Assembly: GCF_000143415.4 (NCBI RefSeq)
Contig: NW_003314371.1
Span: 265,380 to 329,379, forward strand
DNA from: Selaginella moellendorffii
Taxonomy: Eukaryota > Plantae > Lycopodiophyta
Direction: 5' to 3'
Length of the DNA stretch: 64,000 bases
The notes under the pieces were generated by a model that was not told the origin of the DNA, searched no databases, and was given only the letters and a program-made list of their open reading frames with translations. The position numbers and the translations under genes were made by a program. Of this stretch, positions 27,962 to 52,179 are shown one piece after another. The stretch's first letter is position 1. Each line of letters opens with the position of its first letter.

Positions 27962-30900
27962 TTACAAAACCTTCTTCTTTGTAGACAAGTTGAACCCGAT
28001 GCTGTAAAAGATATGCCAGCCACCATTTTGTTCTAAGAGATGAGCATTTGCATCGCCCTTCTTAAAGTGCCTGCGTCCACCAAGTTTGCATCCCGAATAT
28101 AGATGGGATCTGTATGCCAGCCGAAAAAACGGACGCTGATCTCGTTTGTGCCATCGTTTTGGCCACTCCTGAGCCTGGAAACACTCATCCCGTTCCATGT
28201 TGAGTTGGAGCCATATCCCGGACACACAAATCGGGCCTTTGGCCAAGAGCTTCAGACGTATCAACTGTTGGGACCAGCCGTGCGTAGGAAGGGCACCTTG
28301 ACGATCGAGATCGAGCCAAGGGTGTGCTCTGGAATTCCTCACGGTGGCACACGAATTAAAGAACTGTCGGAATTCTGCACTTGAGACTTCAACATGTCTG
28401 TATCGAGGAAAGCTGACAGACTCTTCTTCTTGTTCATTGACCACTTTCTCCACCACCACCTGTTTGTTCTCCCACAGTAGAAATGTAAATTCGGTATGTG
28501 CCAAGTCGAGGGGAGCAAGCTTGCGCAACTCAAACCAGCACGGCAGCCAGTCTGCAACAGTGTACCGCCAGTGCTGCCATTTCAACTCTGCCATGAACTG
28601 TGGGTCGTGAGAAAACAAACCAGCTGCGGTGCCTGCAGGATCGTAAAAAATCTTCATCTTGGCCTGCTTCACTCTCACCCCAAGAGCCTACATATCCCAT
28701 AATCCATAAAACCTGGAAGATTGTTCCGGAAGAGGCATAGGTCATGACCATCCGAGTGTCTGCTGAAAACAATGGTGTAGGTGTATATACCCCCTCTTGA
28801 TACTCGGATTTCAAAATACGAATTTCCAGTATACCTCCCATGCAGGTGTTCATAATCAGACCATCCTTGATCGTGTGCCACCAGTTGGATCACAATTGCT
28901 TGCACTGGCTTGAAACCTGAAACCGTCTCTTCCAGTAGTATCACGTCCTGCATTGGCACAAGAGGCTCTATTGCTTCAGAGTTATTTAAGTGAACAGGAA
29001 CTGCCAGCTGATTCTTGCATCCAGGAGTCAATCTGGACGAGTAGTAGCTTATGGTTTGCAGCTGGGATAGAACCTTCATAAGGATAATCAAGGTATAAGA
29101 TCAATGCCATGAGAAAGGAAATACATACCTCCAAATCACTGGGGGAGATGTGAACTTTGCTACCACTGAGATAAAGACGTTGCAATGATTTGCATTTGCT
29201 AAGGCCTGGAACGTTGGCCGCAGCCAGATAAGTTGAGTGAAGTCAAGCTTGATAGTCCGGTGACACCATGTATTTCCTTGAGATTGATGCAATTGCATAG
29301 AATCAGTTCCTCTAAGTGGTGTAGTTCTCCCAGGTCTGGCAAAAATTCAAGTTGAAAGCAGTCCCCCACGTCCAGAACTCGGGGTTGCCCGGGTATGCTT
29401 TTCAGTGCTCCTGGCAGCCCACTTACCTTGGTTAATAGGAAGCAGTGATCAAGCCGAAGTTGTTCTGTTTTGTCAAGATAGGAAATAGAGAGAGGCACGG
29501 CTTGGATGCGGCTATAAGCAATGTTAAGCCTCTTCAATGAACCGAGGCCTCCAAAAGCATGCGGCAGTTGAACAAGAGCACATCCTTCGAGATCCAGCTT
29601 CAACAGATTTTTCAGGTTCTCAAAGCCTTGAGGGAGCATGCTGAATTCCTTACAGTTCTTGAGGATCAGCTCCTCCAAGCTCACCAGCTTGCCAAAATCA
29701 GGTGAGAGCTCTGTCAACTGCGAGCACTCCGTCATGTCGAGGTTAACAAGGCTCCTCAGCTCACCAAAACCTTATCGAAACATGTGGAGAGACTTCAAGT
29801 GAGATAGCCCAGCAAACGACGTCAGGCTCATGCAGAACGAGATATCCAGATTCTCGATCTTTTTTATGTTGCCAAATGCCCCAGGGAGACTAGAAACTGA
29901 CGTGCCAGCCAGATCAAAGGTTTCCAGCCATTCAAGGTTGCCAATAGAGTCAGGGAGCTCCTGAATTCTTGAACACCACCTTAAAGATAGACTTCGGATC
30001 CTGCAGTGGCTGGGAAAGTCTTGTAGCAGAGTCAAGCTTTTGCATCCCAAGCTTTTCACTCAAGTTGGCAAGTCGTGTTAGAGCGGAACAAAATCTCAAC
30101 GAGATACGTCTGATATCTTGGATAGCTCCACGTGTTTGATGGTTGTCAAGCTTTTGCATTTATCCAACACCAACTCCACCAATTTGTCCATTACCACCTG
30201 AAATGAATGGTGAACTTATGAATGGTGATTTAACCTTTTGCGACTCGCTACCTTGTGCTCGTCATGGTCATCCCAAAGCCTGTTGATGTTGCTTCCAGAA
30301 AGGTCCAAGAAGCTGATATTTGTCTTCGAGGCGGGAGATGAATGACGAAGGCTACTATCCAAAGTCATGCCCCTCCAACTCAAATAATTCAGATATGGCA
30401 TCTGCTTAAAGCCCCCGTCGATCTGACAAGACCCCATGGTTAAGAAGGCAAGACCGTTGAGTACGTTGAAGCAACGTGTGTCTCGTCTTGAGACTTTGCT
30501 GCCAAATAAGCTCATTGTTCTGATCTTTGGAGTCCCCTGGAAAAGAACACGGAGCTACATTAACTGCTGAGTCACGTCTCATGCTTCTGGTCAAGAGTTT
30601 ATCAGCGTCTTTGTAGTTCCACATCCGGCTCCTCTCTCCAATGCTTTGGGATTCCCTGTTCACTTCCTCGTGGGCCATGTCACGTATGAGATCGTGATAC
30701 GGCATCAACTTCAAGCTTTCCAGCCGCAGTAAGTGCTTGTCCAACAAGACTTTGATATCATGGTTCATCATGCTCTCCTCGACGTCTTCCATGGCTTCCC
30801 AGATCCAGCAAACGCTTGCCCTGCTCACCTCTCCAAAGAAGCAGCAAATGTCGAGAAAGATTTCCCTCTCTCTTTGATGCAGCGGCTCCAGGCTGATGCG

Positions 30901-31956
30901 CAACTTGTCCACAACTTCTGGATAGGAGCTTAACTTGCTCTTGGCGCCTCTCCAGTAGCGCTCCCTTGGAGCATCAAACCAGCCATTTCGAGCACCAGGG
31001 GTACGCCCTTGCATTCGCCCACAATCTCTTCCACCAGGCTTCGATCCAGTCCGGCGTCCGGTTTGGCATGCTGCTCGAAAAGCATCCTCGCATCCTCGTG
31101 CTTGAGTTGACCCACTGCATGGATGAAGGTGAGGCTCCTGAGGGTGTCTCTGTCTTGGCTGGTTACAATCACGCGGCTGGAACGTCCCAGAGGAGGGAGC
31201 AGCTTCAGGAGATAGGCGTGGCTTTCCACATCGTCAAGCACCAGCAAGACGTTGACGCTGGACAGGCGCTTTTGCTGGAACAAATAATGTCGAGCTTTGG
31301 ACTCGCTGAGTTCCAAACCTGGACAGGATGCCTGCCACTCGGCCTTCACTACCAACGTACCCATTTTCACTTGGATCGTCATCTTCTCCACCGGATGCAT
31401 TCAAAAGAAACTCAAATATGTCTTTGGCAATCTTTGCAGTTGTAGCACTCGTCTGTCTGCACACCAGACAACATGTAAGTCTTAAAAAACTCTGTATGAT
31501 AGAACTTAACTCATTGAGATCCACTACATGTCCTGAGATCATCGAGACCGTTGTGAATGCCGCTATCCACTCTTGAACCTCTTCCTCAGTGGCACGACCT
31601 TTGGCTGTCAGTGCTGCAAAAGAATCTCTATAACCATGTCGGAGGGTCGACTCCATGAAAGACAGGATAAATGATTTTGCAATCCGGCTGCATCTCCATG
31701 GCTTTGACAGCCTCAAGAACTTCTGCGTTGCACCATGTTGATTCTGCAAACTTGGGAGAGAAAACAATGACATAGATATTGGCATCCCTCTGTGCCCTGA
31801 GTAATTGACTGGGGATTCCTTGTCTTGGTTGCAGCTCTTCCTTGTCAAAGAATGCACATGTTGCCTCTTGAGCTCCTGATTCAGGGAATCAGCAAATGAC
31901 AGTTTTGCATCTGGCCCTCTGTGTGATATGAAGACTTCATACTTAATTGCTGCCAT
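27962..31956 (-). pseudogene. TIR-NB-ARC-LRR gene copy 1 with post-LRR extra domain(s); frameshifted, P-loop deleted
   Basis: MAAIKYEVFISHRGPD (TIR), STWCNAEV, LLVLDDV, SRVIVTS, GVPLVL, PYHDLIRDMA and LxxLxLxxC LRRs, then C-terminal ORFs 29091-28675 and 28678-27962. Several frameshifts; the ~200 bp carrying GxxxxGKT in copy 2 is missing at ~31315. Confidence 0.85.
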
Positions 31957-32296
31957 AGAAACATGTGACTGCAAAGATCAGATTTGAACCATTGGGTGCT
32001 CGAGAAGTATTATCAGGCCACAAAGCTGGCAGACACGGCTCTTGGAGCGAGAAAGGGAGGAGGGAGTGTGGTGGGAGAAAGGGCCTCAGGGTGTCTCAGG
32101 CAAGGAGACGGGGGAATGTATGATTTGTAAATCCCCTAATTATACTTCTGCAGAGAACCCATGTGAGTCCAGCAAATAAACATGCTGATGTTTGCTCTGA
32201 ACACATTGGAGGTGGCCAATTGAGATAAGAAAGTGCTATAACATCAATCATATGCAATGTGATGACTAACATTGACACTCAACTTTTTGTTCTGGA

Positions 32297-35200
32297 CAGA
32301 AGATGTGCATTTTAATTAATTTAAAAACCCTAGTTTATATACAAAAGTGAATGGTCTAGATTGAAACCAATCCAATATCTACTAAGATCTCACTACATTA
32401 ATATTAATATATAACATTATAACTATACATTTGGACCTAAAATCATCCCCTCCCCTTAGAATGATGGAAGACCATCAAAGTTTTCTTATAGATGAGCTTG
32501 CAATTAAAGGAATATCAAAAGGAAGTATTGATAGATCTGTAAGTGGTGTTAATTGTTCTTAATCCTTTTATACAAAGCATTTCAGTTGCTATACATGTAC
32601 AATTTTAAGAGGATTGGCTTACTATATATCATGTCAAACTTCATAAACTTATGATCCCACTTGCTACAACACCCAATACGGTCCTTTCTAATGAGTAAGG
32701 AGCCCCTTAAATAAATTACAAGTCAAGTAGTTAGAAGTAATAATAACATACTAATAGTTGATTATGGAAAAGGCCTCATTAGATCAAATACCACAAACTC
32801 AAATAGACAGGAAATTGCAATTAACTCTAACTATCTTTTTGCAACACGAAAGGGAGTATTACAAGCTTGGTATCAAATCCAACTACATACATACCAGATA
32901 ACATCATGTCACATCTTCGGCCAATGAAAAGACCTACAAAGCTTCTCGGTCATATGACGACGTCCCATATGCCCATCTAAAATAGGAGAATCATGGTAGA
33001 CAAAAAGAAAGCGTGGAATAAAGATTGAAAGCACCACCAACCGTAAATCATCATCAGGATTTATCCTTATAAAATAAAGAAAATTGTCATTAAGGTGATA
33101 TTAAGAATGTAAATACCGAAAAGGTAAATTATCAACAAGTGATGTAGGATTTTCAATCTTATTGTGAAGCTTTTAAATCCATGGCTTAATCTTTTGAGCT
33201 TCATAAACCTCATCAAGAGAAAATAAATTTTACTTTGCACCTTGTGGACACTAAATGTCAAGTATAACTACCGCCGATGGTACAAAATCCTCGTCCAAAA
33301 ATTCACAGATGCGGGAGCAATAGATTCGTTAAAAACATGAGAAAAAAATGAAAATGAAAAAGAGCTTGAGAAAGGGCATTAGTATCAGCCATAGACTCTC
33401 CGGGCGATGAATAACATCAAAATTATATATTTGAAGTTTCAAAGCCCACCAAGTAGTACGATCAACCAAATTCTTTTGCTTCAATAATGAAGTAATAGTT
33501 GCATGATCACCTTTTAGTAACATCAAGAACCAAATATGCATGAAATTTTTTGAAACCCCAGACTATTGCTAAACACTCATTCTTTGTCTTAGAGTAGTTC
33601 ACATTTACTAGTTGTAATGTATGGCTGATCTATGCAATAATACAGTGCTGAACAATGACATTCAGGCTCTCTTGCATCAATAGACCTTTAAGACTGATGT
33701 CAGAAGCCTTTATGTGCAAAATAAAAAGTCAAAAGTAGTCAAGATATGCCAAAACCGGAGGAGTTGTCAATAACACTTTGAGATCCATAAATGCCTACTT
33801 ATAGTCTGTAGATCAAATGAAAGATGACATTAATGATTTCAACAACACTCTCAACAGTGTAATGTAATCAAAAAAATGATCAACAAAACTACTAAGATAT
33901 TGCACCCTGCCCAAAAAATGTTGCATATCATTTACACAATTTGGAGTAGAGAGCTTTAGAATAACCACAATTTTATCAAGATCAACTTGCAAACCCTCAT
34001 GAGAAATATGGTACCTAAGATAAGTTGTATCCTTGGATCTAAACACACACTTTAACTACTTCAGCTTTAAACCAATTTTCCAAAATCAATTCAACACTTT
34101 ACAAACATCATGGATGTGTTCCTCACTTGTCCTCTCTAAGTGGATTAAGATATCATCAATAAAGTTAATAATCACCTTTAACATATTGTAAAGAACCTCG
34201 TCCATCATCCACTGGAAAGTTGTTAGAGCATACCAAACAACATCACCAAGAATTCGTACAAATCAAATGATGTACGAAAAGTAGTCTTGGGAATATCATC
34301 TTCAGCCATTAATACTTGCCAGTAATAAGAAGCAAATTCTAATTTGGTGAACTAACAACTTCTCCCTAGACAATCCAAAAGATCAGTAGTGTGAAGAAAA
34401 GGGTATAAATTCAAGACCATCAATTCGTTTAATAGATGATAGTCAATGCAAAAATGAATACTCCCATTAGGCTTCATCACAAGATGATATTCACACGCCT
34501 AAGGACTCCACAACTTTTGAATAACATACTTTTTTAACATTTCCTTAATGTTTACATATAAAATGACCAATGATTAACAAGAACCTTGATTGAGTGAGCA
34601 TCCTTAGTTGGAATAGGATGACATGTTACAATTTTGGCTCAAGACGATAGGTCAAATTCAAAGAGATTAACATACTCCTTCAGCCGGTCAATTGCTACAA
34701 CACAAAGACCGTCAAAGGGATCAGAAAAGGGAAGAGAAGAACAAGATAGAAACATAGTAGGAAGTAATTGAGAGATAAAAGTGATAGAAATAAAGGTAAA
34801 AGTAGGATGAAAAAGAATAAAAGTGAGAAGAATGAAAGAAATATAAAGAAGTATGAGATAGAAAAGCCTCAAAATCATATTTGGCATAATTGCATTATAA
34901 CCAATTCATATATAAGATGAAATAGACCTAGTTGTATGTATGAGCAGTCTTGAACTTGAGTTGCAATCATTGTGGGTGGTGCTAAGTCAAACTTTTGACC
35001 TCATCTTTAGTATATATGTGTGTATGACCGTTGCTATAAAGAATGAAAACTGCCTCTATTGCATGATGCAAATGTAGATAGCAATGTGTGGCAACAAGCT
35101 AAGTAATAAAAGATAAACTCGAGTCTATATCAACTAACATGAAAAGAAGAATAAGAGACCTTTTATTATAAAAAAAGATCTTGGAAAGTAAACATTAGAT

Positions 35201-37107
35201 GAACTGGTGCCGAATGAACCTTTTGAAAATACTCTCGAAAGAAAGATAAAAGGGTCATTGACTTATTCGCACAAAGCCCCTTTATTACTTGTGTAACTCT
35301 TCATTTCCCAAAAGCATCTTGATGTTCAAACTTTCCATTACAACAGCACCAACAAGATGTTGTTGATGCTAAGGTCTCCACCCAAGAAATGGAAGTCGTT
35401 AATCTAAAAAATGCTAACAATGCCGATAAGTGTGATTAACTTCATCGCATGTATAATAATGGACATTGGAACAGAACCATCTCCCACAGAAAGTGGAGTT
35501 GAAGGACATGCAACAAGAAGTGGAAGAAGCAACATTTCATAATGTTGTGCCAAGCGAAGAGCATCATCAAGGGTGGTGGGAGCAAATGCATACACAAGTC
35601 TTACAAAATCTTGACAAAGTCCCGGGCACAACATTTTCAATTTGATCCACTCTGACATATTTGGCTTCGCACGAAGCAAGAGGCTTCGGAAACGAACACC
35701 AAATTACATCACAGACTCATATGGCTTTTGACAAAGACAATACAATTATTAATATGTCAATTAATAATTATTACAATTATTAATATGTCAAAATGCACAT
35801 TTGAAAATGTCCGGGAGAATGCTCCAATTCTCATGAGTGGCTGCACTCAAACATTGTACCATTGCAGTGTTGTTCCTTAAAAATATGTGGGAAATTCACA
35901 TAAATGCTGAATATCATCCCAATAATGATCTGAAGCAATCACTGTGAAATGATTAAACCAATGGTATATATCATCCTAAGGATTCATATGGAAGAACTCC
36001 AGCCAGACTCGAGGATTGGCAACAAGAATAGGAAGAGCTATATTATGTGTCATAAATACTACTATCAATTGAGTTTGTGTTCAATTACAACCATATAACA
36101 TTGAGCAATTGCATTAATTGTTTCTCCAAAGTCAAAGGAAGAGGAGGTTGCTGCTCTGCCATGAAAATGAAAATGAACAAAAAGGAAAAAAACAAAAAAG
36201 AAGAAATTGAAAAAAACTATAAAGAAAAGAAAATCTAAGCAATGCAAAAGCTAAATTTATAGTAGAATCCCAAATTTAAGCACTCCTCAAAGACAAATAA
36301 AGTTGCCCCTCATTTTCACCAATGTGAGTATATTGTAAGCAACAAAAGGGAACGACTCGAGAAACGATCCGTTGGGGTTCAAATATAGAAAGAAAGGGCC
36401 CATGAATAAGAGTGCACCTCCTTTTCCAATCGGTCAAGGGTCTTGGGATACTTGGGGTTAAGTGTCCTTGGGTTTGAATAGTACTGGGTTGGGTGACCTC
36501 CCGGGTGGGCTGGGTGACCTCCCGGGAAGTCCAAACTCAGGAGCTTACATTTGGTATCAGAGAGGTCTCGGGTCTGACTCTGTTGGTTGGCTAAGGGAAT
36601 CACACCACATGTTGATTGACATTTGGCTGGTCCAGTTTGCTCCCGCTGGGCTCGACCCGAGGGGTAGGGTGTCAAGAGAGCGAGGCTCTTGGAAGAGTTG
36701 TGGCTCTCAGCTTCCGTTCACGAGGGCGTGAACTTGCAGGGAAGCGTGGTAGATTGTAAGCAACAAAAGGGAACGACTCGAGAGACGATCTGTTAGGGTT
36801 CAAATATAGAGGGAAAGGGCTCATGAATAAGAGTGCACCCCCTTTTCCAATCGGTCAAGGGTCTTGGGATACTTGGGGTTAAACGTCCTTGGGTTTGAAT
36901 AGTACTAGGCTGGGTGACCTCCCGGGAAGTCCAAACTCAGGAGCTTACATATATGAGATTATAGAAAATGTGCATTTTAATTAGCCTGAAAACCCTAACT
37001 TATATATAAGAGCGAGTGGTCTGGATTGAAATCAATCTAATGGCTACTAAAATCCCACCATATTAATATTAGTATATAGCATTATAACTATACATTTGGA
37101 CCTCACA
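32297..37107 (-). mobile_element. Heavily decayed Ty3/Gypsy LTR retrotransposon, same family as the element at 59818-64000
   Basis: Related LTRs at ~32297-32442 (partial, followed by PPT tcatcccctcccct) and 36323-37107 (TGTGAG...CTCACA, interrupted by a TRIM). Remnant gag/RT/RNaseH/IN peptides are collinear with the 60-64 kb element. Confidence 0.85.
36334..36949 (+). mobile_element. TRIM (terminal-repeat retrotransposon in miniature) nested in the Gypsy LTR
   Basis: LTRs 36334-36549 and 36755-36949 (TGTAAG...CTTACA), PBS TGGTATCAGAG (tRNA-iMet) at 36552, purine-rich tract before the second LTR, 205-bp non-coding interior, 5-bp TSD TATAT at 36329-36333 and 36950-36954. Confidence 0.92.
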
Positions 37108-37274
37108 ACTTGAATTTTATAATTCCCTTTAAGGAATTTGATAATTTTCTTTGAGGAAATTTATGCTTATAATTACTTTTCATTCAAAGTGGAATGTAAT
37201 TTGTTGTGTTAATACTATTCCAATTTAATTTTCAATGTAGCAAAATTATAATAATCAAGACAGTGTTTATATAT

Positions 37275-37276
<2 letters not shown>

Positions 37277-37313
<37 letters not shown>
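37277..37313 (+). repeat. (CT)n microsatellite, present only in duplication copy A
   Basis: Run of CT dinucleotides at the 3' end of the lipase-EP gene; absent at the matching position near 46130-46180. Confidence 0.9.
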
Positions 37314-37315
<2 letters not shown>

Positions 37316-39277
37316 ACATGCAAAACCTTAGTTTTTTTTTCTTTGGTCAACCACCACAAAGAGAGCTCAATGTCTTTGGCCAAGTCTTTGATATGTTCAG
37401 CACGTAATTCTAAGGTTCCTTCTTCTTCAACCCTGGCAAATAGCACCGAGTCTTGAGTCAAGGCTGGCAGAGAGCTCCCATCAATGTTTCGGCCTCCTGT
37501 AATTTGGTTGTGCCTATACCATTCTTCCAGTACCTTGTAACGCTTCGGCCTTGCACTCAAGTAGCTCCTCCCAGTGTCGTCTCTCTTCCCAAGTCGTTAG
37601 TAATTGGCAATGTCCAAAGGCTCAACCAAGAGCCTAAAAGTGTGCCCAGAATTAACCCATTTGTTCTGCGCCTTGAACGTCAGAGGAAGCAAACCATTTG
37701 AGTACATGTCTATGGTTTCATCCCAAAAGTTTGTCTCCACCATGCGGTTCAAGTTGGCTTCCAAAGCCATATCGTCATTATACAGCTTGAAGTGCTTCAT
37801 CTTTTTCTCACACTGCCTCTTGAACCATTCCAGCTTTGCCATTGCATGTAGCACCTTGGCAAACTCGCTGTGCCTGTTAGCTGCATTGGCCTCCACCATT
37901 TCCCTGGTTTTCCTGTCCTGGAAAAGCACCAACCTGTTCTGAACATCCTAGAAGACAACCAAACGTCATAAAGCCCCGTTGGGCGACTAGGAAATGCTGT
38001 TACTTTGATGCCGAGGCCCAACGCGTGAAGCTGGAGAGCAATCTCCAACTCAAACACCGATTGTGTTTCCTCCACTGCCATTTGCGCAAACTCTCCACCT
38101 AGTTTACCCATTATGTCCGGCAGCGTCTGTAGGATTTGCATGTAGTGCCATAGCGTGTGCTCCAAGATGTGTGCGGCAGGCTTGGACGAAACCCCGTGAT
38201 CCTTTTCCTGGAGTGTCAAGTGCAGCATCTGCAACACTGTGACGGGCTTGTCGATCATAGAAGCACCACTGGTGCAGAAGAGGTAAGCTCCAAAAGGCCT
38301 GTAGGGGCTCACTTTGCAAATGCTCCGGAGCAAAGTGTTAGCGAATCCGGTGTAGACCGCACTCGCGACCTGTGCAGATGCCTTGACAACAGTATTCACC
38401 AAGCTGGCCGATGCTTCTCCAATTGCAGCAGCAGTAGTAATCGCCTCTTCCTTGGCACCACCGTGTTTGATACGAGCACTAGTAGCGCTTGCTCTCGAGT
38501 TCCAGAAGGGGAGGAGCGCTCGGAGAGACTTTGAGATGGATTTGAGAGGAGCGAGGAGCATTCTGGGGACGATGTCGTGCCTGCAAACAACGTGTACGAA
38601 GTGATCGTCCCAGCCTTGACTCTGCGCAAGCTCGCTCAGCTTCACGTCGCCCACAAATGGCATCCCAAACGTGACGCACACAAATCTCAGCTTCTGGAGC
38701 TTGATCGCGGTGGCGGTGCGACTGAGATAAAGAAGCCACAGCGTGGCCAGGGCCGCAATGGCGCCTCCGAGTGAGTGGCCTGTGAAGATAATTATGTTTT
38801 GACTGTCTTCCAACTTCTCAATCTGCAAATGCGGACCTCGATCCTGAAGGGGAGAAAGAAAGAAGTAAGAACTTACGGTGTTCGTGAGTTTGCCATCTCT
38901 CCAGATTTCAGCAAATCTTCTTGTGAAGCCTCTGTGAGCCAGGGATTCAAAGAACAAGTCACTGGAACTGTTGCAGCCCCAATGCGCTGGTGCCTGCAGG
39001 CCTTCCCAGAGTGGTGAAAGCCTATAGTCGGAATCCATCACCACATCCTCTAGAACTGCGGTGCCTGGGAATGAGATCCACACCGTTTCTTCCTCAGCGT
39101 CATGGTAAAACCGTTCGCTTGTCAGCAATCCTGTAAGCCCTGGCCGAGCAGTCGAGCGACTTGAGGACAAGCTCCCCGTTCACCAGGAGCTCCGCATTCT
39201 TTGTTTAGGATTAGGATTAGCATCTGGGCTCAGGATTAGCATCTAGGCTTACATCCAAAAAGAGCACAAGTACTCAT
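37312..39277 (-). pseudogene. EDS1/PAD4-family lipase-like + EP-domain gene, copy A (5' frameshift, in-frame TAA after EPLDIANY)
   Basis: Lipase: IIFTGHSLGGAIAALATLWLL, CVTFGMPFVGD, FVHVVCRHDIVPRMLLAPL, YRPFGAYLFC, EH..HY. EP domain: MAKLEWFKRQCE, NFWDETIDM, KWVNSGHTFRLLVEPLDIANY*RLGK...RPKRYKVLEEW...LTQDSVLFARVEE. Start position uncertain. Confidence 0.85.
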
Positions 39278-39481
39278 CGAAAAAATCCAAGTCTTTCTTG
39301 ACTTAGTCTTTAAACACAATTCACTTGGACATATGATCAATCTTTGCCGAGATTCGCCACTTTTGATTTTGCTGCGAAATCTTCGACAGCGTGGCTCCCA
39401 GAGTCCTTCCACACTTTTTCCGCCACTGACAAAAGTGCGAGACACCAGGTTTCAGGCTTCGAGAAAGGTGGCAGACTTTGA

Positions 39482-40812
39482 CTAGCGTGCGCTCGTAGCA
39501 GTCAAGGGAGAAGCTGCGTAAGAAGAGCCGGTTTGTGACGTCGTCGTTGTCGTCGTCGTCGTCCAACCATGGTGGCGAATCTGTCCAAAGTAGTTGGGAG
39601 TGTCTACCGTGGTGAGCGGCTCTAGCTCGAGGTAACCCATGAGCATCGCAACCACGGCACTCATCGTTGGCCGGCTCCCTTCAAATTCTCGGCTACACAG
39701 CAATGCGACGTGCGTGGCTCGGTGAGCCTCTTCTGCGATGTAAAACTTTTCCAGTCTAGGATCGATTAATTCTTCGAGCTTTCCAGCACCAAAGAGGCTC
39801 CAAGCCTGCCACCAGAGGAAACAAGTAAGAAACACCAAGCTTGAGATCATGTTTTACCCATTGCGCAAGGATTTCTTCTTCCACAGGAAGTGTGTCATCC
39901 ATGCACTTCCTGCCGCTGATGATCTCGAGAACAAGAACTCCAAAGCTGAAAACATCGGCCTTGGAAGATAGTCGCCCTCGAAGAACGTACTCGGGTGCCA
40001 TGTATCCACTATTACACACTGGTGAGTTCCAGAATAACAAGCGAGAAAGGAGAAACGCTTACACTGTCCCGGCCAGTCTCGTGGTTGTGTTTTCTCTGTC
40101 CACTCCCGCCAGCTTGGAGATTCCAAAGTCGGAGATCTTCGGCTGGAGCATTTTGTCAAGGAGGATGTTGCTGGCCTTGATGTCCCGGTGTATAACCTGT
40201 TCGTGTGATTCCTCGTGGAGATAAGCGAGGCCTTTCGCCACTCCCACGATAATCTGGAAGCGAGCTGGCCAATCTAAGAGTAAACTCTTTCCTGGCAATG
40301 ACTACCTAGTTACAATGAGCTTAAAGGAAAGATGGATTCACTTACCGAACAGTGTTTGATCGAGGCTCCCTTTCTCGAGAAACTCGTAGACGATAAGCCG
40401 ATGATTCCCCTCGCAACAGTATCCCTCGAGCATCACAAGATTTTTGTGACGAATGCCGGTGATAATATCGATCTCATTCACAAACTCCCTCTTTCCTTGC
40501 TGAGACTCCACCGAAAGCCTCTTCACAGCAAACACGGTTCCATCGCCAAAGAAAGCCTACACACACGAGCTGACAAGTTTAGAAGTTGGCAAAGTTTATA
40601 TTTTCTGTGCTTGCCTTGTACACGGTGCCAAATCCGCCTTGTCCGAGTTTGTTTCGGTCGCTAAAGTCTTCGGTGGCCTCACACAAATCCCGGTAAGAAA
40701 ACGCAATGGGTCCTCTCGAACTCCCTGAAAACACAAAGCTTCAACAAAGCGAGAAGAAGAGGAGGAAATGTCCTACTTTGCAGTTCTGAAGAAGGAACTC
40801 GAGGCAACCCTC

Positions 40813-40843
<31 letters not shown>

Positions 40844-41649
40844 GGACCTTCTGCGCTTGACGAGCAGAAGTCCGGCAACTCCCAGGATCAAAAACACTGG
40901 CACCACAACACCAGCCACAATGGCTGCTGTGTTGCCTGATCCGCCACTGCCACCGCCTGAAAGAACGAATTCTCTTCTAGCTCAAAGCTTTGATTTGTAC
41001 CTGGAGTGCTAGCAGGAGTTGGAGGGGGAACCACTGGAGGTGGAGCTGGAGCGGAGGCATTTGGACCCAATATTCCTAGCGTCCCTGGATAAACAATGAT
41101 GGAAGAACTTTGACATTGGAAAGAAACAAGGAAAAACTTTGAGGCAAGAAACCAAGAAGCAAACCCGATGGCAAGTCTCTCGTAAAATTGCTATTCTCGA
41201 ACCGCATGTTGCATCTTTCTGCTGTGGAATTGCTCCAGAAACGGGCACCAATTGGAAATCTCTGAGTGAAACTCAATGAATCCATCGTCTAGAAGTTGTT
41301 CGAAACTTACAGCTCGGGCATTGGCATACGCCTGCTGGATGCAAGATGAGCAGCTGGGCTGGTCCGACATGTTGTAGCAAGCCGTGTGCGCGTAGGCGAT
41401 GTTGGGAAACGCACCATATCCGAGAGAAGTTGCAAATCCATTGGAGGGATTGAACCCCTGGAGGAATTCGAAGACCGTGTCGAGATTTCGCTGGAATGGG
41501 CTGCCTTCGCTGGTGTTGCCGGTGTTGTAGTAGAGAACGTTTGGTAGTTGACCTGGATCCGTGACGTCCACTGGTCGCTGCTGCTGTGCTGCGAGAGGCC
41601 GTGTGCCAAAACAAAGAATGAGAAGAAGAACCCACCACAAGCAGCTCAT
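39482..41649 (-). CDS. Single-DUF26 cysteine-rich receptor-like kinase (sdCRK), copy A; multi-exon
   Basis: Signal peptide, one DUF26 ([13 protein letters not shown]), Pro-rich stalk, TM helix, poly-Arg stop-transfer, kinase motifs [38 protein letters not shown]. One intron appears to be GC-AG. Confidence 0.9.
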
Positions 41650-41739
41650 CTCTAATCCTATATTTCCCTCCCGACCATAGATCATACATCTAGTTTTGTC
41701 AGGATTTCATCTTATATGATTTTTACCCTCGCTTGCTCG

Positions 41740-44491
41740 GTTTAGTTAATAGGAAGCAGTGATCGAGCAGAAGCTGTTCTGTTTTGTGAAGATAGGAAAC
41801 TGAGAGAGGCACGGCTTTGATCCAGCTATATGCAATATTAAGCCTCTTCAATGAACCGAGGCCTCCAAAAGCATCCGGCAGTTGAACAAGAGCACATCCT
41901 TCGAGATCCAGCTTCAACAGATTTTTCAGGTTCTCAAAGCCTTGAGGGAGCATGCTGAATTCCTTACAGTTCTTGAGGATCAGCTCCTCCAAGCTCACCA
42001 GCTTGCCAAATCAGGTGAGAGCTCTGTCAACTGCGAGCACTCCGCCTTGTCGAGGTTAACAAGGCTCCTCACCTCACCAAAACCTTGATTTAACTTCACG
42101 ATACCACATTGAAATATGTGGAGAGACTTGAAGTGAGACAGCCCAGCAAACGACGTCGGCAATGAGCTAAGGCTCATGCAGAACGAGATATCCAGATTCT
42201 CGAGCTTTTTTATGTTGCCAAATGCCCCAGGGAGACTAGAAACCGATCCAGCCAGATCAAAGGTTGCCAATAGAGTCAGGGAGCTCCTGAATTCTGGAAC
42301 ACCACCTTAAAGATAGCCTTCTGATCCTGGAGTGGCTGGGAAAGTCTGGTAGCAGAGTCAAGCTTTTGCATCCGGTAAGGTTGAGCATCTCAAGCTTTTC
42401 AGTCAAGTTGGCAAGTCGTGTTAGAGCGGAACAAAATCTCAACGAGATACTTCTGATATCTTTACATAGCTCCACTTGTTTGATGGTTGTCAAGCTTTTG
42501 CATTTATCCAACACCAACTCCACCAATTTGTCCATTACCACCTGAAAAATGGTCTTATGAATGGTGATTTAACCTTTTGCGACTTGTTACTGTGCTCGTC
42601 ATGGTCATCCCAAAGCCTGTTGATGTTGCTTCCAGAAAGGTCCAAGAAGCTGATATTGTCTTCGAGGCGGGGGATGAATGACGAAGGCAGTACATCCAAA
42701 GTCATGCCTCTCCAACTCAAATAATTTAGATATGGCATCTGCTTAAAGTCCCCGTCGATCTGACAAGACCCCTGGTTAAGAAGGCAAGACCGTTGAGCAC
42801 GTTGAAGCAACGTGTGTCTCGTCTTGAGACTTTGCTGCCAAACAAGGTCAGTGTTCTGATCTTTGGAGTCCCCTGGAAAAGAAACACAGAGCTGAGTCAA
42901 CGTCTCATAACTTACCATGCTTCTGGTCAAGAGTTTTCAGCAGTTCCAGATCCGGCTCCTCTCTCCAATGCTTTGGGATTCCCTGTTCACTTCCTCGCGG
43001 GCCATGTCGCGTATGAGATCGTGATACGGCATCAACTTCAAGCTTTCCAGCCGCAGTAAGTGCTTGTCCAACAAGACTTTGATATCATGGTTCATCATGC
43101 TCTCCTCTGACGCATGGCTTCCCAGATCCAGAAAACACTTGCCCTGCTCACCTCTCCAAAGAAGCAGCAAATGTGGAGAAAGATTTCCCTCTCTCTTTGA
43201 TGCAGCGGCTCCAGGCTGATGCGCAACTTGTCCACAACTTCTGGATAGGAGCTTAACTTGCTCTTGGCGCCTCTCCAGTCGCGCTCATCGCTTTTCCCTT
43301 GGAGCTTCAAACCAGCCACTTCGAGCACCAGGGGTACGCCCTTGCATTCGCCCACAATCTCTTTCACCAGGCTTCGATCCAGTCCGGCGTCCGGTTTGGC
43401 ATGCTGCTTGAAAAGCATCCTCGCATCCTCGTGCTTTAGTTGACCCACTTCATGGATGAAGGTGAGGCTCCTGAGGGTGTCTCTGTCTCGGCTGGTTACA
43501 ATCACGCGGCTGGAACGTCCCAGAGGAGGGAGCAGCTTCAGGAGCTGGGCGTGGCTTTCCACATCGTCAAGCACCAGCATGACGTTGACGCTGGACAGGT
43601 GCTTTTGCTGGAACAAATAATGTCGAGCTTTGGACTCGCTGAGTTCCACCTTTGAGATGTCTTTGACAATCCTGACAAAGAGGGCATTGGTGCCGTGGCC
43701 CTTAACCTCCTACCGGACCCTCACGAAACAAGATGCCTCAAAATTCCCTTGAATCCTGTTGAAAACCTCCTTGGCAAGTCTCGTCTTCCCAATTGCGCCT
43801 TGCCCAGTGATACCAACGCTTGTCACCATCTGCCCGCTCTTTCTAAACCTGGACAGAATGCCCGCCACTCGGCCTTCACTATCGACGTACCCATTTTCAC
43901 TTGGATCATCATCTTCTCCACCGGCTGCATTCAAAAGCAACTGAAATATGTCTTTGGCAATCTTTGCAGTTGTAACACTCGTCTGTCTGCACACCAGACA
44001 ACATGTAAGTCTTAAAAAACTCTGTATGATAAAACTTAACTCATTGAGATCCACTCCTGAGATCATCGAGACCGTTGTGAATGCCGCTATCCACTCTTGA
44101 ACCTCTTCCGCAGTGGCACGACCTTTGGCTGTCAGTGCTGCAAACGAATCTCTATAACCATGTCGGACGACCCCAGGATTGACTCCATGAAAGACAGGAT
44201 AAATGATTTTGCAATCCGGCTGCATCTCCATGGCTTTGACAGCCTCAAGAACTTCTATGTTGCACCACGTTGATTCTTCAAACTTGGGAGAGAAAACAAT
44301 GACATAGATGTTGGCAACCCTCTGTGCCCTGAGTAATTGACTGGGGATTCCTTGTCCTGGTTGCAGTTCTTCCTTGTCAAAGAAACAGTGCACTTGTTGC
44401 CTCTTGAGCTCCTGATTCAGGGAATCAACAAATGATACCTTTGTATCTGGCCCTCTGTGTGATATGAAGACTTCATACTTATTTCTGCCAT
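41740..44491 (-). pseudogene. TIR-NB-ARC-LRR gene copy 2; frameshifted and 3'-truncated at the duplication junction
   Basis: TIR KYEVFISHRGPDTK...STWCNIEV, P-loop GITGQGAIGKTRLAKEVFN, MLVLDDV, GVPLVL, YHD and LRRs. One base is lost just after the ATG relative to copy 1; LRR breaks off at LLTK near 41745. Confidence 0.88.
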
Positions 44492-44939
44492 AGAAACATG
44501 TGACTGCAAAGATCAGATTTGAACCATTGGGTGCTCGGGAAGTATTATCAGGCCACCAAGTTAGAAGAGCAAAGGTGAGGCCCTGGGCCACAAAGCTGGC
44601 AGCGCTTGCCGCGATTGAGATCTCTGGCCGCTCCAACACGGCTCTTGGAGCGAGAAAGGGAGGAGGGAGTGCGGCTGGAGAAAGGGCCTCAGGGTGACTC
44701 GGGCGGGGACATGGAGGAACGTGAGCATGGGAATGGAGGACACGAGAAGACCCCCACAACAAACTTTTTCCTGGCCACCACAACACTGCCAAAACAGAAT
44801 CTTCAGTTCAATTCAATTCAACTATAAATTGATGGTACCTTCTTTATGCACATAGGTCTAATCACTAGTACCTTTATCGAAGCTTAGAACCAATAGTGGT
44901 TCACTAGAGGACAACTGACACCTCTGGGCAATCCAATTG

Positions 44940-45800
44940 GCTAGCATGTTCATGCTTATCTATGCTGATGACATACTGCACGGAGGAACTTTAATTACAA
45001 ATCTGCAGCGAATCTGACCTCAACATCAACCTGAACAAAACGTGGATAATGATCTTTGGGCTAGACCAGAACCAGAAAGTCTTCTACCAATCCTGCATGT
45101 GGAGGAATACAAATATTCCAGCTACGTGACTCATTGGGGGGCAGGTGGTGTAGTGGAGCAGAGGAAAGCAGCTGAACGAGCATACTATAAGCTATTATCA
45201 GATTCCGGGAGGGCTGACTTGCACAGACGGGAAATCAACACAGTCTTTTATCTCATGAAGGTCACCACAGTTGTGTTGTATGGTGCAGAGATGTGGGGAC
45301 TCTGACTCGGCATGAAACAATGGCAATTGAGGCTCTATTCCGAGAAAACTTATGCAATCATGGTCATGGAGTTGGGCTTGTTACTGTTAGAGATCCTCAT
45401 CTGGCACCATTGTATATGTTCAGAAAAGTAGATTCTCAACTTGCAGATGCGGCAATCAACAACTCAAAAGCTCTTGACCAACAAAGGATGGTGGCACAAC
45501 ATGGAGTGGACCAAAAGATTTGGCTTCAACCTGGAGATCCTCACAGCAGTCTATCAAGAGGACTAGAGTTGTGGACACAGATAGCTCTTGTCACACAATT
45601 GAGGAAAAAGGCAAAGTACAATATTTAACAAAACTCAGTTAACTCCATGGAAATCTTTAGCCCCACTTTGTATAATAAGATCAACATGGAAAAGAAGAAC
45701 GTTAGCAAGATAACACATATGGAGTCACCACCTACTCATGGAACTCAGATGCAGAGTTCAACCACCAAGTCCACGGGACTGATGGATTTACTGGCTGATA
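44940..45800 (+). mobile_element. Non-LTR retrotransposon (LINE, RTE/L2-like) reverse transcriptase fragment
   Basis: MLIYADDIL at 44952, LNINLNKTWIMIFG, VEEYKY and VVLYGAEMWG spread over shifted frames. Boundaries approximate. Confidence 0.7.
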
Positions 45801-46174
45801 AGGGGTAACTGTCAAAAGGTTCTTTAACCACATCTTAGTGAATAAACATGCTAATGTTTGCTCTGAACACATGGGGGTGGGGTGAGATGAGATGATATGT
45901 GTCATATGCAATATGATGACTAATATTGACATTTAACCTTTTGTAGTGGAAATTTGATGGGCCTCTTGAATTTTATAATTCCTTTTAAAGAATTTGATAA
46001 TTTTCTTTGAGGAAACATTTACTTTTTCAAATCGTCATTCAAAGTGGAATGTAATATTTATTGTGTTAATACTATTCCAATTTAATTTTCAATGTAACAA
46101 AATTATAATAATCAAAACAGTGTTTGCTAATTGAGTAGCATATACTACATAATAGTTATATGACATGCAAAATC

Positions 46175-48128
46175 CTAGTTTTTATTTTCTTTGGTCAACC
46201 ACCACAAAGAGAGCTCAATGTCTTTGGCCAAGTCTTTGATATGTTCAGCACGTAATTCTAAGGTTCCTTCTTCTTCAACCCTGGCAAATAGCACCGAGTC
46301 TTGAGTCAAGGCTGGCAGAGAGCTCCCATCAATGTTTCGGCCTCCTGTAATTTGGTTGTGCCTATACCATTCTTCCAGTACCTTGTAACGCTTCGGCCTT
46401 GCACTCAAGTAGCTCCTCCCAGTGTCGTCTCTCTTCCCAAGTCGTTAGTAATTGGCAATGTCCAAAGGCTCAACCAAGAGCCTAAAAGTGTGCCCAGAAT
46501 TAACCCATTTGTTCTGCGCCTTGAACGTCAGAGGAAGCAAACCATTTGAGTACATGTCTATGGTTTCATCCCAAAAGTTTGTCTCCACCATGCGGTTCAA
46601 GTTGGCTTCCAAAGCCATATCGTCATTATACAGCTTGAAGTGCTTCATCTTTTTCTCACACTGCCTCTTGAACCATTCCAGCTTTGCCATTGCATGTAGC
46701 ACCTTGGCAAACTCGCTGTGCCTGTTAGCTGCATTGGCCTCCACCATTTCCCTGGTTTTCCTGTCCTGGAAAAGCACCAACCTGTTCTGAACATCCTAGA
46801 AGACAACCAAACGTCATAAAGCCCCGTTGGGCGACTAGGAAATGCTGTTACTTTGATGCCGAGGCCCAACGCGTGAAGCTGGAGAGCAATCTCCAACTCA
46901 AACACCGATTGTGTTTCCTCCACTGCCATTTGCGCAAACTCTCCACCTAGTTTACCCATTATGTCCGGCAGCGTCTGTAGGATTTGCATGTAGTGCCATA
47001 GCGTGTGCTCCAAGATGTGTGCGGCAGGCTTGGACGAAACCCCGTGATCCTTTTCCTGGAGTGTCAAGTGCAGCATCTGCAACACTGTGACGGGCTTGTC
47101 GATCATAGAAGCACCACTGGTGCTGCAGAAGAGGTAAGCTCCAAAAGGCCTGTAGGGGCTCACTTTGCAAATGCTCCGGAGCAAAGTGTTAGCGAATCCG
47201 GTGTAGACCGCACTCGCGACCTGTGCAGATGCCTTGACAACAGTATTCACCAAGCTGGCCGATGCTTCTCCAATTGCAGCAGCAGTAGTAATCGCCTCTT
47301 CCTTGGCACCACCGTGTTTGATACGAGCACTAGTAGCGCTTGCTCTCGAGTTCCAGAAGGGGAGGAGCGCTCGGAGAGACTTTGAGATGGATTTGAGAGG
47401 AGCAAGGAGCATTCTGGGGACGATGTCGTGCCTGCAAACAACGTGTACGAAGTGATCGTCCCAGCCTTGACTCTGCGCAAGCTCGCTCAGCTTCACGTCG
47501 CCCACAAATGGCATCCCAAACGTGACGCACACAAATCTCAGCTTCTGGAGCTTGATCGCGGTGGCGGTGCGACTGAGATAAAGAAGCCACAGCGTGGCCA
47601 GGGCCGCAATGGCGCCTCCGAGTGAGTGGCCTGTGAAGATAATTATGTTTTGACTGTCTTCCAACTTCTCAATCTGCAAATGCGGACCTCGATCCTGAAG
47701 GGGAGAAAGAAAGAAGTAAGAACTTACGGTGTTCGTGAGTTTGCCATCTCTCCAGATTTCAGCAAATCTTCTTGTGAAGCCTCTGTGAGCCAGGGATTCA
47801 AAGAACAAGTCACTGGAACTGTTGCAGCCCCAATGCGCTGGTGCCTGCAGGCCTTCCCAGAGTGGTGAAAGCCTATAGTCGGAATCCATCACCACATCCT
47901 CTAGAACTGCGGTGCCTGGGAATGAGATCCACACCGTTTCTTCCTCAGCGTCATGGTAAAACCGTTCGCTTGTCAGCAATCCTGTAAGCCCTGGCCGAGC
48001 AGTCGAGCGACTTGAGGACAAGCTCCCCGTTCACCAGGAGCTCCGCATTCTTTGTTTAGGATTAGGATTAGCATCTGGGCTCAGGATTAGCATCTAGGCT
48101 TACATCCAAAAAGAGCACAAGTACTCAT
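46175..48128 (-). pseudogene. EDS1/PAD4-family lipase-like + EP-domain gene, copy B (same lesions as copy A)
   Basis: ORFs 46645-48021, 46445-46780 and 46175-46408 match copy A, including GHSLGG and EPLDIANY*. Confidence 0.85.
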
Positions 48129-48332
48129 CGAAAAAATCCAAGTCTTTCTTGACTTAGTCTTTAAACACAATTCACTTGGACATATGATCAATCTTTGCCG
48201 AGATTCGCCACTTTTGATTTTGCTGCGAAATCTTCGACAGCGTGGCTCCCAGAGTCCTTCCACACTTTTTCCGCCACTGACAAAAGTGCGAGACACCAGG
48301 TTTCAGGCTTCGAGAAAGGTGGCAGACTTTGA

Positions 48333-49663
48333 CTAGCGTGCGCTCGTAGCAGTCAAGGGAGAAGCTGCGTAAGAAGAGCCGGTTTGTGACGTCGTCGTTG
48401 TCGTCGTCGTCGTCCAACCATGGTGGCGAATCTGTCCAAAGTAGTTGGGAGTGTCTACCGTGGTGAGCGGCTCTAGCTCGAGGTAACCCATGAGCATCGC
48501 AACCACGGCACTCATCGTTGGCCGGCTCCCTTCAAATTCTCGGCTACACAGCAATGCGACGTGCGTGGCTCGGTGAGCCTCTTCTGCGATGTAAAACTTT
48601 TCCAGTCTAGGATCGATTAATTCTTCGAGCTTTCCAGCACCAAAGAGGCTCCAAGCCTGCCACCAGAGGAAACAAGTAAGAAACACCAAGCTTGAGATCA
48701 TGTTTTACCCATTGCGCAAGGATTTCTTCTTCCACAGGAAGTGTGTCATCCATGCACTTCCTGCCGCTGATGATCTCGAGAACAAGAACTCCAAAGCTGA
48801 AAACATCGGCCTTGGAAGATAGTCGCCCTCGAAGAACGTACTCGGGTGCCATGTATCCACTATTACACACTGGTGAGTTCCAGAATAACAAGCGAGAAAG
48901 GAGAAACGCTTACACTGTCCCGGCCAGTCTCGTGGTTGTGTTTTCTCTGTCCACTCCCGCCAGCTTGGAGATTCCAAAGTCGGAGATCTTCGGCTGGAGC
49001 ATTTTGTCAAGGAGGATGTTGCTGGCCTTGATGTCCCGGTGTATAACCTGTTCGTGTGATTCCTCGTGGAGATAAGCGAGGCCTTTCGCCACTCCCACGA
49101 TAATCTGGAAGCGAGCTGGCCAATCTAAGAGTAAACTCTTTCCTGGCAATGACTACCTAGTTACAATGAGCTTAAAGGAAAGATGGATTCACTTACCGAA
49201 CAGTGTTTGATCGAGGCTCCCTTTCTCGAGAAACTCGTAGACGATAAGCCGATGATTCCCCTCGCAACAGTATCCCTCGAGCATCACAAGATTTTTGTGA
49301 CGAATGCCGGTGATAATATCGATCTCATTCACAAACTCCCTCTTTCCTTGCTGAGACTCCACCGAAAGCCTCTTCACAGCAAACACGGTTCCATCGCCAA
49401 AGAAAGCCTACACACACGAGCTGACAAGTTTAGAAGTTGGCAAAGTTTATATTTTCTGTGCTTGCCTTGTACACGGTGCCAAATCCGCCTTGTCCGAGTT
49501 TGTTTCGGTCGCTAAAGTCTTCGGTGGCCTCACACAAATCCCGGTAAGAAAACGCAATGGGTCCTCTCGAACTCCCTGAAAACACAAAGCTTCAACAAAG
49601 CGAGAAGAAGAGGAGGAAATGTCCTACTTTGCAGTTCTGAAGAAGGAACTCGAGGCAACCCTC

Positions 49664-49694
<31 letters not shown>

Positions 49695-50500
49695 GGACCT
49701 TCTGCGCTTGACGAGCAGAAGTCCGGCAACTCCCAGGATCAAAAACACTGGCACCACAACACCAGCCACAATGGCTGCTGTGTTGCCTGATCCGCCACTG
49801 CCACCGCCTGAAAGAACGAATTCTCTTCTAGCTCAAAGCTTTGATTTGTACCTGGAGTGCTAGCAGGAGTTGGAGGGGGAACCACTGGAGGTGGAGCTGG
49901 AGCGGAGGCATTTGGACCCAATATTCCTAGCGTCCCTGGATAAACAATGATGGAAGAACTTTGACATTGGAAAGAAACAAGGAAAAACTTTGAGGCAAGA
50001 AACCAAGAAGCAAACCCGATGGCAAGTCTCTCGTAAAATTGCTATTCTCGAACCGCATGTTGCATCTTTGTGCTGTGGAATTCCTCCAGAAACGGGCACC
50101 AATTGGAAATCTCTGAGTGAAACTCAATGAATCCATCGTCTAGAAGTTGATCGAAACTTACAGTTCGGACATTGGCATACGTCTGCTGGATGCAAGATGA
50201 GCAGCTGGGCTGGTCCGACATGTTGTAGCAAGCCGTGTGCGCGTAGGCGATGTTGGGAAACGCACCATATCCGAGAGAAGTTGCAAATCCATTGGAGGGA
50301 TTGAACCCCTGGAGGAATTCGAAGACTGTGTCGAGATTTCGCTGGAATGGGCTGCCTTCGCTGGTGTTGGCGGTGTTGTAGTAGAGAACGTTTGGTAGTT
50401 GACCTGGATCCGTGACGTCCACTGGTCGCTGCTGCTGTGCTGCGAGAGGCCGTGTGCCAAAACAAAGAATGAGAAGAAGAACCCACCACAAGCAGCTCAT
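48333..50500 (-). CDS. Single-DUF26 cysteine-rich receptor-like kinase (sdCRK), copy B; multi-exon
   Basis: Same exon structure and kinase motifs as copy A, with six amino-acid differences in the DUF26 ectodomain. Confidence 0.9.
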
Positions 50501-50562
50501 CTCTAATCCTATATTTCCCTCCCGGCCATAGATCATACATCTAGTTTTGTCAGGATTTCATC

Positions 50563-52179
50563 TTATATGATTTTTACCCTCGCTTGCTCGTAAAGTGCGT
50601 TTAACAGTTCCATGTCATGTCCATTGTCTCGATCGAGATTAGAGCTTCTCCTTCGCGAATTATCAGCTGGGGGACCCGAGGTCGAGGTAGCCGAGCAACA
50701 TCGCCAAAACGTCGCCCATTGCCGGTCGAAGCTCTCCAGTCTTGGGTGCAAAGCAAAGCAACGTGAAGCGTTCTGTGGACTTCCTCGGCGACATAGTCAT
50801 TCCCGACTCTCTCATCGACGCACTCGTCCAATCTCCCAGCCTCGCTCAAGTTCCAAGCCTACACCACAGTGTCACCGTTAAGTTTGTATGGAAGTTATCG
50901 ATACAATGCCAAACTTTCGAGCGGCACCAGCAGTTCTTCCTTGTCCGGGCGTGTTATGTCCACGCGAGCACGACTCCAAAGTTGAACAGTCGGCCTTGGA
51001 CCCACCAATCAGACAAACTTAACACGCACAGAACTTAAAAACTTAAAGGTGCCAGCCACGTTTGCGCTCTTGAAACCTTTCTCGAAGTCAAAGAGCTTGG
51101 AGATCCCAAAGTCTGCGATTTTGGGCTCCAAAGTGCTGGTCAAGAGGATGTTGCTGGCTTTGATGTCTGATTCGAGAAGATCGCCACAAATAAAAAGGGA
51201 GAGAAGAGAACGAACAAAGAAAACCAAGAACACGCAAGAACACAAGCAGCGACACGAATCCGATCGAAAGGCGACCGCCGTGTAGATATGCAAGGCCACT
51301 GGTGGGCAATCTGGAAGAGAGAAGGACCGCTTCTTTGGTTCCTATCATGATCAAATATGAAAGTGAAAAAGGATGAACAACTTACCAGGCTCCCTTGCTC
51401 CAAAAATTCATAGACAAGAAACCTGTCGTCCCCTATCCTTTGAGCCTCACAAGGTTCTTATGCTGGACGCTGGAGCTCATTCACAAACTCCTTATCTCCT
51501 TGTAGCGAGAGCTTCTTTACTGCCATCGGCCTACAAAAAAAGCTACATGAAACCAATTTTAGCTTTCCACCTTGCTTTCCTTCACTTTTGATCTCCTATT
51601 CCCTTGCTAACAAGAACACCCCAAGAACAGCACAAACAAAACAAAGCACGGCTCCTCCCACCACAGCACCAGGTATAACGCCCTTTCTCCTCCCAGCTGG
51701 AGCTAGAGCTGGATTTAGAGATGAAATGTTTGGACCCGGAGTACAAGGAGGAGAGTTATTACTCAAACTTTTATGGTTTTACCAGGAACGATCGCAAAGC
51801 TGAAAGGATCGTATCTCATGCGACCTTTGAAAGGTCTGGTTGATCCAAATGATACCACCAGTGGCATATCAAAGAAGGATGTTCATGTAGGCGTCCTGGA
51901 TGCACTGTCCACAGCTCGGCTGGTCGGACATGTTGTAGCAAACACTGTGTGCGTAGACAGGGTTTGGGAAGCCGCCATAGCCAAGGCTTGCTGCATAGCC
52001 GTCTGGCGGATTGTGCTTGTAGAGGAACTCCAGGACGGCCACCACATTTCGCTGGTAAGTGCTGTTCGCGCTGGTGTTTGTTGGGAAGTAGTATACCAGA
52101 TTTGGCTCTGTGTCTGGGTTTGGATCGTCTGGTGAGCTAACGAGCGGCCAGCGACACATGCCAAGATCAGCCACAGCAT
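50563..52179 (-). pseudogene. Decayed sdCRK paralogue
   Basis: [11 protein letters not shown] signal, DUF26 [41 protein letters not shown]...DFGISKLF and EEVHRTLHVALLCTQ, fragmented by frameshifts and deletions. Confidence 0.85.

Follow-up and report, generated by a model that had tools for sequence, protein, structure and literature searches.

A probable fossil TIR-NLR/EDS1-family gene pair bordering a receptor-kinase array in Selaginella moellendorffii

The two-domain proteins of the EDS1/PAD4/SAG101 family (structures 7xey, 7xjp, 8zf0 and 4nfu) are the closest described counterparts of a gene that we find, in two copies, in the lycophyte Selaginella moellendorffii. Papers from 2019 to 2026 confine the EDS1 family to seed plants, with robust EP-domain homology only there; EDS1/PAD4 homologues have been reported in some ferns (Castel et al. 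2025), and our literature search found no paper mentioning a Selaginella EDS1-family gene. The DNA analyzed here, called the window, is a stretch of 64,000 nucleotides on S. moellendorffii scaffold GL377675.1 (~265380-329379), compared with annotation GCA_000143415.2. Like the known family members, the Selaginella gene (hereafter lipase-EP) encodes a lipase-like domain with a Ser-Asp-His triad and the SPYRPFG motif, an EP domain with EPLDIANY, and a Lys and an Arg aligning with K478 and R493 of AtEDS1 (numbering from our own alignment). It differs from them in being borne by a lycophyte, in its broken frame, in an altered DSCFW motif and in a shorter C-terminus; whereas the known proteins form heterodimers, protein searches found one type of family member in S. 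moellendorffii. Next to it lies a gene for a TIR-type NLR of TIR-NB-ARC-LRR (leucine-rich repeat) layout, hereafter TNL. We consider it likely that the locus is a fossil TIR-NLR/EDS1-family pair on the border of a live receptor-kinase array, duplicated once.

On the minus strand, Pfam and self-BLAST give the order CRK receptor kinase, lipase-like plus EDS1_EP, TIR-NB-ARC-LRR, and this order is present twice. The GCA_000143415.2 annotation shows the identical order of Pfam families, and its EDS1B-like locus on GL377675.1 is 100% identical to window positions 36445-57889. The gene order, shared orientation and coordinates given in an earlier note on this DNA thus all hold by Pfam, self-BLAST and public annotation, and its caveat that the NLR and lipase-EP copies are pseudogenized is borne out by stops, frameshifts and a deletion in the copies. 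The parts of the repeated unit are as follows.

48333-50536, minus strand: CRK-A; Pfam Stress-antifung/DUF26 (PF01657) plus Pkinase, annotated product of 586 aa, apparently intact
46175-48128, minus strand: lipase-EP copy A, an EDS1-family pseudogene (Pfam, alignments)
46175-48021, minus strand: open reading frames (ORFs) of lipase-EP copy A; Pfam Lipase_3 E 4.9e-19, EDS1_EP E 4.3e-16 and 2.8e-5
43095-44792, minus strand: TNL-A ORF; Pfam TIR E 1.4e-20 plus NB-ARC
41742-44492, minus strand: TNL-A pseudogene (Pfam, alignments)
41739-41742, no strand: duplication junction, the end of TNL-A abutting sequence upstream of CRK-B (self-comparison, read contigs)
39482-41685, minus strand: CRK-B (annotation, comparison with CRK-A)
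37312-39277, minus strand: lipase-EP copy B (comparison with copy A)
27962-31974, minus strand: TNL-B pseudogene (Pfam, comparison with TNL-A)
29202-29735, minus strand: LRR families of TNL-B (Pfam)

By both of its defining domains, lipase-EP is a true member of the EDS1 family. The N-terminal part matches the class-3 lipase-like alpha/beta-hydrolase profile (PF01764, E 4.9e-19) and aligns with EDS1 and PAD4 chains of the PDB to E 1e-27, including the family motif SPYRPFG. The EP domain (PF18117) is recovered as two pieces above the curated cut-off that cover profile positions 1-142 of 211; its PDB matches are PAD4 chains and the EDS1 chain 8zf0 (E about 3e-12 to 7e-12), followed by other EDS1 chains (5e-6) and SAG101 (0.006). 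A weaker, shortened C-terminal EP remainder can still be recognized, and the idea that the duplication boundary had cut off the EP C-terminus is accordingly not supported. In copy A, the predicted catalytic triad lies at 47623-47625 (Ser), 47425-47427 (Asp) and 47005-47007 (His), and two GT-AG introns are found at 47674-47727 (54 nt) and 46796-46851 (56 nt), sizes typical of Selaginella.

No open frame spans the whole two-domain protein. An in-frame TAA interrupts the EP domain of both copies (46445-46447 in A, 37597-37599 in B), directly after EPLDIANY and at a position occupied by Tyr in the relatives, as judged from alignment to Ginkgo proteins; the codons for the Lys and Arg aligning with AtEDS1 K478 and R493 follow downstream of it (46433-46435 and 46388-46390). 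Near 47972-47981, a 1-nt frameshift common to both copies is probable: the conserved N-terminal helix and the next strand lie in different frames, with no space for an intron. The corresponding NCBI model (P0001) is named 'LOW QUALITY PROTEIN: protein EDS1B-like [Selaginella moellendorffii]'. Of 61 alignment columns conserved to 85% or more among 84 seed-plant members, lipase-EP nevertheless retains 48, within the 43-61 kept by real members. Because most family-invariant residues are kept, the gene would have been under purifying selection until recently, and its decay would be recent.

The neighboring TNL resembles ROQ1 (7jlv), with which TNL-A aligns from the TIR domain through the P-loop (E 1.6e-27), sharing the catalytic Glu and GxxGxGKT, with WHD_ROQ1 and LRRs following; unlike ROQ1-type TNLs, both Selaginella copies are pseudogenes, and Pfam detects no C-JID. 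In TNL-A, the TIR domain (44055-44480; PF01582, E 1.4e-20), with the predicted catalytic Glu of its WCNIEV motif at 44253-44255, and the P-loop (43782-43805) are intact. The gene is interrupted by an in-frame TAG (43710-43712), its frame shifts near 43100 within the winged-helix region, and the LRR region breaks off at 41742, leaving no 3' end. We considered an intron at 43650-43710 and rejected it: a transcript contig is colinear with the genome and the frame is the same on each side, so the TAG is a true in-frame stop. In TNL-B, the TIR domain is frameshifted, with a match limited to profile positions 1-29 and no TIR that has the catalytic Glu, and a 197-bp deletion takes out the P-loop; this copy still has WHD_ROQ1 and LRRs and, beyond them, a 3' part absent from copy A. 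Although WHD_ROQ1 and LRR families are detected by Pfam in both copies and all domains are represented, neither copy encodes the NB-ARC with its P-loop together with the winged helix and LRRs in a single frame. The ORFs in the 3' part of TNL-B match no Pfam family; for the post-LRR ORF at 28675-29091, language-model features point weakly to F-box-associated proteins, and its single-sequence fold is poor, with a pLDDT of 36.

Both genes are, as far as found, alone of their kind in the genome. In protein searches, the S. moellendorffii matches to EP or lipase are P0001 and P0041 only, both from this locus. The TNL-A TIR is SELMODRAFT_131977: for the proteome of S. moellendorffii, the supplement of Johanndrees et al. 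2022 lists a single TIR protein (number 131977), whose printed sequence is that of TNL-A. Yue et al., as tabulated in PMC3782705, count about 2 NLRs and 0 TNLs in S. moellendorffii. A search for relatives of the TIR, with a restrictive E-value cut-off (1e-10) and length window, returned only the locus's own protein. Lipase-EP lies 1.3-1.7 kb upstream of the canonical TNL, and the chance of two unique loci falling within 10 kb in ~106 Mb is roughly 2e-4 by our own, post hoc estimate. Because the only EP locus found and the only published TIR locus of the genome adjoin each other, chance adjacency is unlikely, and the pairing is probably meaningful. As each is the sole locus of its kind, the TNL would have been the functional partner of the neighboring lipase-EP, and the pair may now be disappearing jointly, as happened to EDS1 and TNLs in some angiosperm lineages.

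A survey of 10 kb on each side of EP genes at five angiosperm loci found TNL neighbors at one of them; the comparison held no other seed-free EP locus. At that locus, in Arabis alpina (CM002875.1:1756290-1784383, P0118), two co-oriented SAG101-type EP units lie directly upstream of a TNL, with a second TNL beyond; it differs from the Selaginella locus in being from an angiosperm, of SAG101 type and without a CRK. The two SAG101-type units and the TIR-NB-ARC-LRR are annotated there as one 2011-aa protein, either a real neighborhood or an annotator's fusion. At Amborella EDS1, Nymphaea SAG101, Aristolochia PAD4 and Prunus EDS1, no TIR or receptor-like kinase (RLK) gene was found within 10 kb. 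In bacterial Thoeris systems, likewise, the TIR signal maker ThsB adjoins ThsA, the sensor of its nucleotide product, although the receptor proteins are unrelated and the setting is a prokaryotic operon; we know of no evidence for common descent with the Selaginella pair.

The repeat is one non-homologous tandem duplication of an 8.85 kb unit, a single event. Self-BLAST pairs 37109-41739 with 45965-50590 (98.6% identity with ragged ends), 29428-31315 with 41742-43648 (90.7%) and 31311-32025 with 43841-44560 (93.1%), so that the unit comprises the CRK, lipase-EP, the spacer and the 5' two-thirds of the TNL. One breakpoint lies upstream of the CRK and the other within the TNL LRR region; comparison of the three sequences at the junction gives a clean, non-homologous join, TNL-A ending at 41742 and the CRK-B copy starting three bases away at 41739. 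The homology of TNL-B ends at an exon-intron donor (AAG/GTAAGT), with which the breakpoint 29428 / 41742 coincides. Contigs of runs from two other studies cover the junction (X6 record 7, 41601-42183; X1 record 2, 41726-41994), and since these independent runs cross it, the junction is real.

Divergence between the copies is unequal along the unit. The CRK and lipase-EP part is 99.7% identical, with 13 differing places between 50525 to 46184 and copy B and none at all over 2.66 kb (50070 to 47404). The differences listed for this part are nine substitutions, all of the CRK ones and all in its DUF26 first-exon ORF (50070-50527 versus 41219-41676; seven of the nine change the residue), together with one single-nucleotide polymorphism, a 3-bp indel and a 1-bp indel near the 3' end that separate the lipase-EP copies. 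Between the TNL copies, identity falls to 94% and there are 24 indels, ~17 of them frame-breaking. Because of this inequality, we infer that gene conversion homogenized the CRK and lipase-EP part after the duplication, while the TNL parts have drifted apart; the patch of CRK substitutions may either have escaped conversion or reflect a diversifying ectodomain. Spacer A measures 1.26 kb (44704-45965) and spacer B 5.0 kb, the latter with degenerate gypsy-like remains that A lacks; within it, 32718-35717 is 77-81% like an element at 60873-63983.

The CRKs combine a DUF26 ectodomain (PF01657) with a kinase domain (Pkinase), have annotated products of 583-586 aa and look intact. They are members of an array in which four or more CRK genes or fragments follow one another, 50601-54918 included, and because of this membership the CRK of the repeated unit looks like a bystander, a neighbor by position only. 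The remaining features of the array and the spacer of copy B are:

52844-54918, minus strand: CRK-1 of the array, 583 aa (self-BLAST, annotation)
50601-52190, minus strand: partial CRK of the array (self-BLAST, annotation)
32298-37103, minus strand: AT-rich spacer of copy B with degenerate Ty3/gypsy-like remains

Read data agree with a live array beside transcribed pseudogenes. In three RNA-like runs, lipase-EP is covered from ~46100 to 47419 by sequence colinear with the genome, with the stop codon present and the 56-nt intron retained; the spacer at 44800-46000 has zero depth in the same runs, which shows that the signal does not come from carried-over DNA. A TNL-A contig of one run lacks a 104-nt minus-strand intron (42707-42810, GT..AG). 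The same contig also skips 70 nt (43056-43125) with GT..AG ends on the plus strand, which does not restore the frame. The CRK 5' ends occur in contigs with a word depth 10-20 times higher than that of the pseudogenes, and the high-depth RNA contigs at the 5' end of CRK-A carry the A-copy allele and A-copy upstream sequence. Judged by these contig depths, the pseudogenes are transcribed at a low level and the CRKs strongly. A 34-nt stretch at 44602-44635 recurs in long, well-expressed contigs of 3.5-4.8 kb that have nothing else in common with the window.

Other versions of the lipase-EP sequence are present in the same data. The lipase-domain segment 47383-47600 is covered in three RNA-like runs by high-depth contigs only (depth 147-217, length 806-1350 nt), which show 7-9 differences from the window and, in one run, diverge completely below 47383. 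Such contigs point to a paralogue or allele that is strongly expressed and has the 5' lipase part only, perhaps downstream of a CRK. In the DNA run X8, the only version of 46260-46495 has 7 differences in 236 nt, spanning the stop-codon region; as copies A and B are identical there, it represents a third copy, an allele or another genotype. In X8 there is, besides, a 1-nt deletion variant at 46650.

The alternative that survives best, and which the earlier note had put forward, is a selected, physically linked sensor-enzyme-transducer module: the CRK would sense, the TIR-NLR would make a nucleotide signal and lipase-EP would receive it, an ancestral TIR-EDS1 layout in which linkage is advantageous. 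Of that proposal, the true EDS1-family gene near a TNL stands, as does an adjacency unlikely to be due to chance (the roughly 2e-4 given above for the only TIR and only EP locus); the shared orientation of the genes, the distance of 205 bp from the CRK stop to the putative start of lipase-EP, and the independent EP-TNL neighbors in Arabis alpina also fit it. We nonetheless regard it as unlikely. The CRK is part of a larger array and looks like a bystander, four of the five sampled angiosperm EP loci are without TIR or RLK within 10 kb, and protein searches found no partner EP protein for a heterodimer. Since the two units go back to a single tandem duplication, they are not independent evidence of linkage, and the 'duplicated unit' of the earlier note, one recent duplication followed by gene conversion, adds nothing to the argument. 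With every lipase-EP and TNL copy broken, and none having an open frame, nothing at the locus works as sensor, enzyme and transducer today.

An ancient horizontal transfer, by which a single gymnosperm-like piece of seed-plant DNA with both a TNL and an EDS1-family gene entered the Selaginella lineage, would explain both the TIR-EP adjacency and the fact that no EP genes are known in other seed-free plants. The best matches of lipase-EP in an exhaustive search of 1.8 billion representative proteins are indeed gymnosperm (Ginkgo, Cryptomeria, Taxus and Wollemia, 37-47% identity), and the 20 best or selected matches looked up by name are all from seed plants or a green alga, with no fern, lycophyte or bryophyte among them; a search for short EP fragments in other species returned nothing. 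The nearest relatives, Ginkgo biloba Gb_07529 and Gb_07530 (P0040, P0002), which differ from the Selaginella gene in being full-length and intact (631-652 aa), are its sisters in both trees (SH-aLRT 96 in one, 89/88 in the other). The TNL has the seed-plant-type WHD_ROQ1 domain, and the literature places EP domains in seed plants only. Transfer is still quite improbable in our judgment: these relatives stand at a mere 38-43% identity and the TIR is without a close relative, the Selaginella end branch is long (1.13) on a weak backbone, and an approximately unbiased (AU) test keeps a position outside all seed-plant members (p 0.2). Also against it are the homologues of EDS1/PAD4 that Castel et al. 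2025 report for some ferns. The context is native, with short, Selaginella-sized introns of 54-56 nt, native GC content and housekeeping neighbors. Between vertical descent from an early vascular-plant ancestor and an old seed-plant transfer, descent is somewhat more likely. A lipase of the green alga Symbiochloris irregularis (P0069, 852 aa) matches query residues 109-366 (E 2.9e-24), beyond the core lipase fold; it shows no match to the Ginkgo EP region.

An assembly artefact, with two haplotypes laid in tandem and one unit per chromosome, is so improbable that we reject it: the whole-segment identity of 98.6% does resemble the haplotype identity of roughly 98.5% reportedly given in the S. 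moellendorffii genome paper, but the window has zero Ns, contigs from two other studies span the junction 41739/41742, and a repeat body of 99.7% identity stands against TNL parts of 94% with different lesions.

Several points weigh against a fossil TIR-NLR/EDS1-family pair as we read it. The best tree sets the Selaginella gene beside the two Ginkgo genes and not outside all seed-plant members, and protein searches found no second seed-free species with an EP gene. The uniqueness of both loci covers annotated proteomes and protein databases. The high-depth variant of 47383-47600 and the X8 version of 46260-46495 mean that further copies or alleles exist, and for the alternate haplotype an exact-protein look-up returned this scaffold only. 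The similarity on which the N-terminal frameshift is based is weak but repeated across several relatives, and the read evidence consists of assembled contigs, which are unable to show rare spliced forms.

The other genes of the window are ordinary and encode a ubiquitin-activating E1 enzyme, an ABC transporter, a UDP-glycosyltransferase, a pentatricopeptide repeat (PPR) protein and a monodehydroascorbate reductase; a Ty3/gypsy element lies at 60.6-64 kb. Between the glycosyltransferase and PPR genes, the window is strongly AT-rich at 16000-20000 (GC 0.26-0.37).

A two-domain EDS1-family gene in a lycophyte would either date the beginnings of the family to early vascular plants or be the record of an old transfer from plant to plant. 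More speculatively, and with low confidence, the EDS1 family and its pairing with TIR-NLRs may be older than seed plants, so that an early vascular plant would have carried a TNL-lipase-EP cassette of which decaying remains persist in S. moellendorffii; such a cassette would have set a TNL making a nucleotide signal beside a lone lipase-EP receptor that may have worked as a homodimer. As read here, the locus offers a natural case of a receptor and a TIR enzyme decaying together. An intact pair of the ancestral type is worth seeking in other Selaginella species and in other lycophytes, and would make the reading of TIR signals in seed-free plants directly testable.

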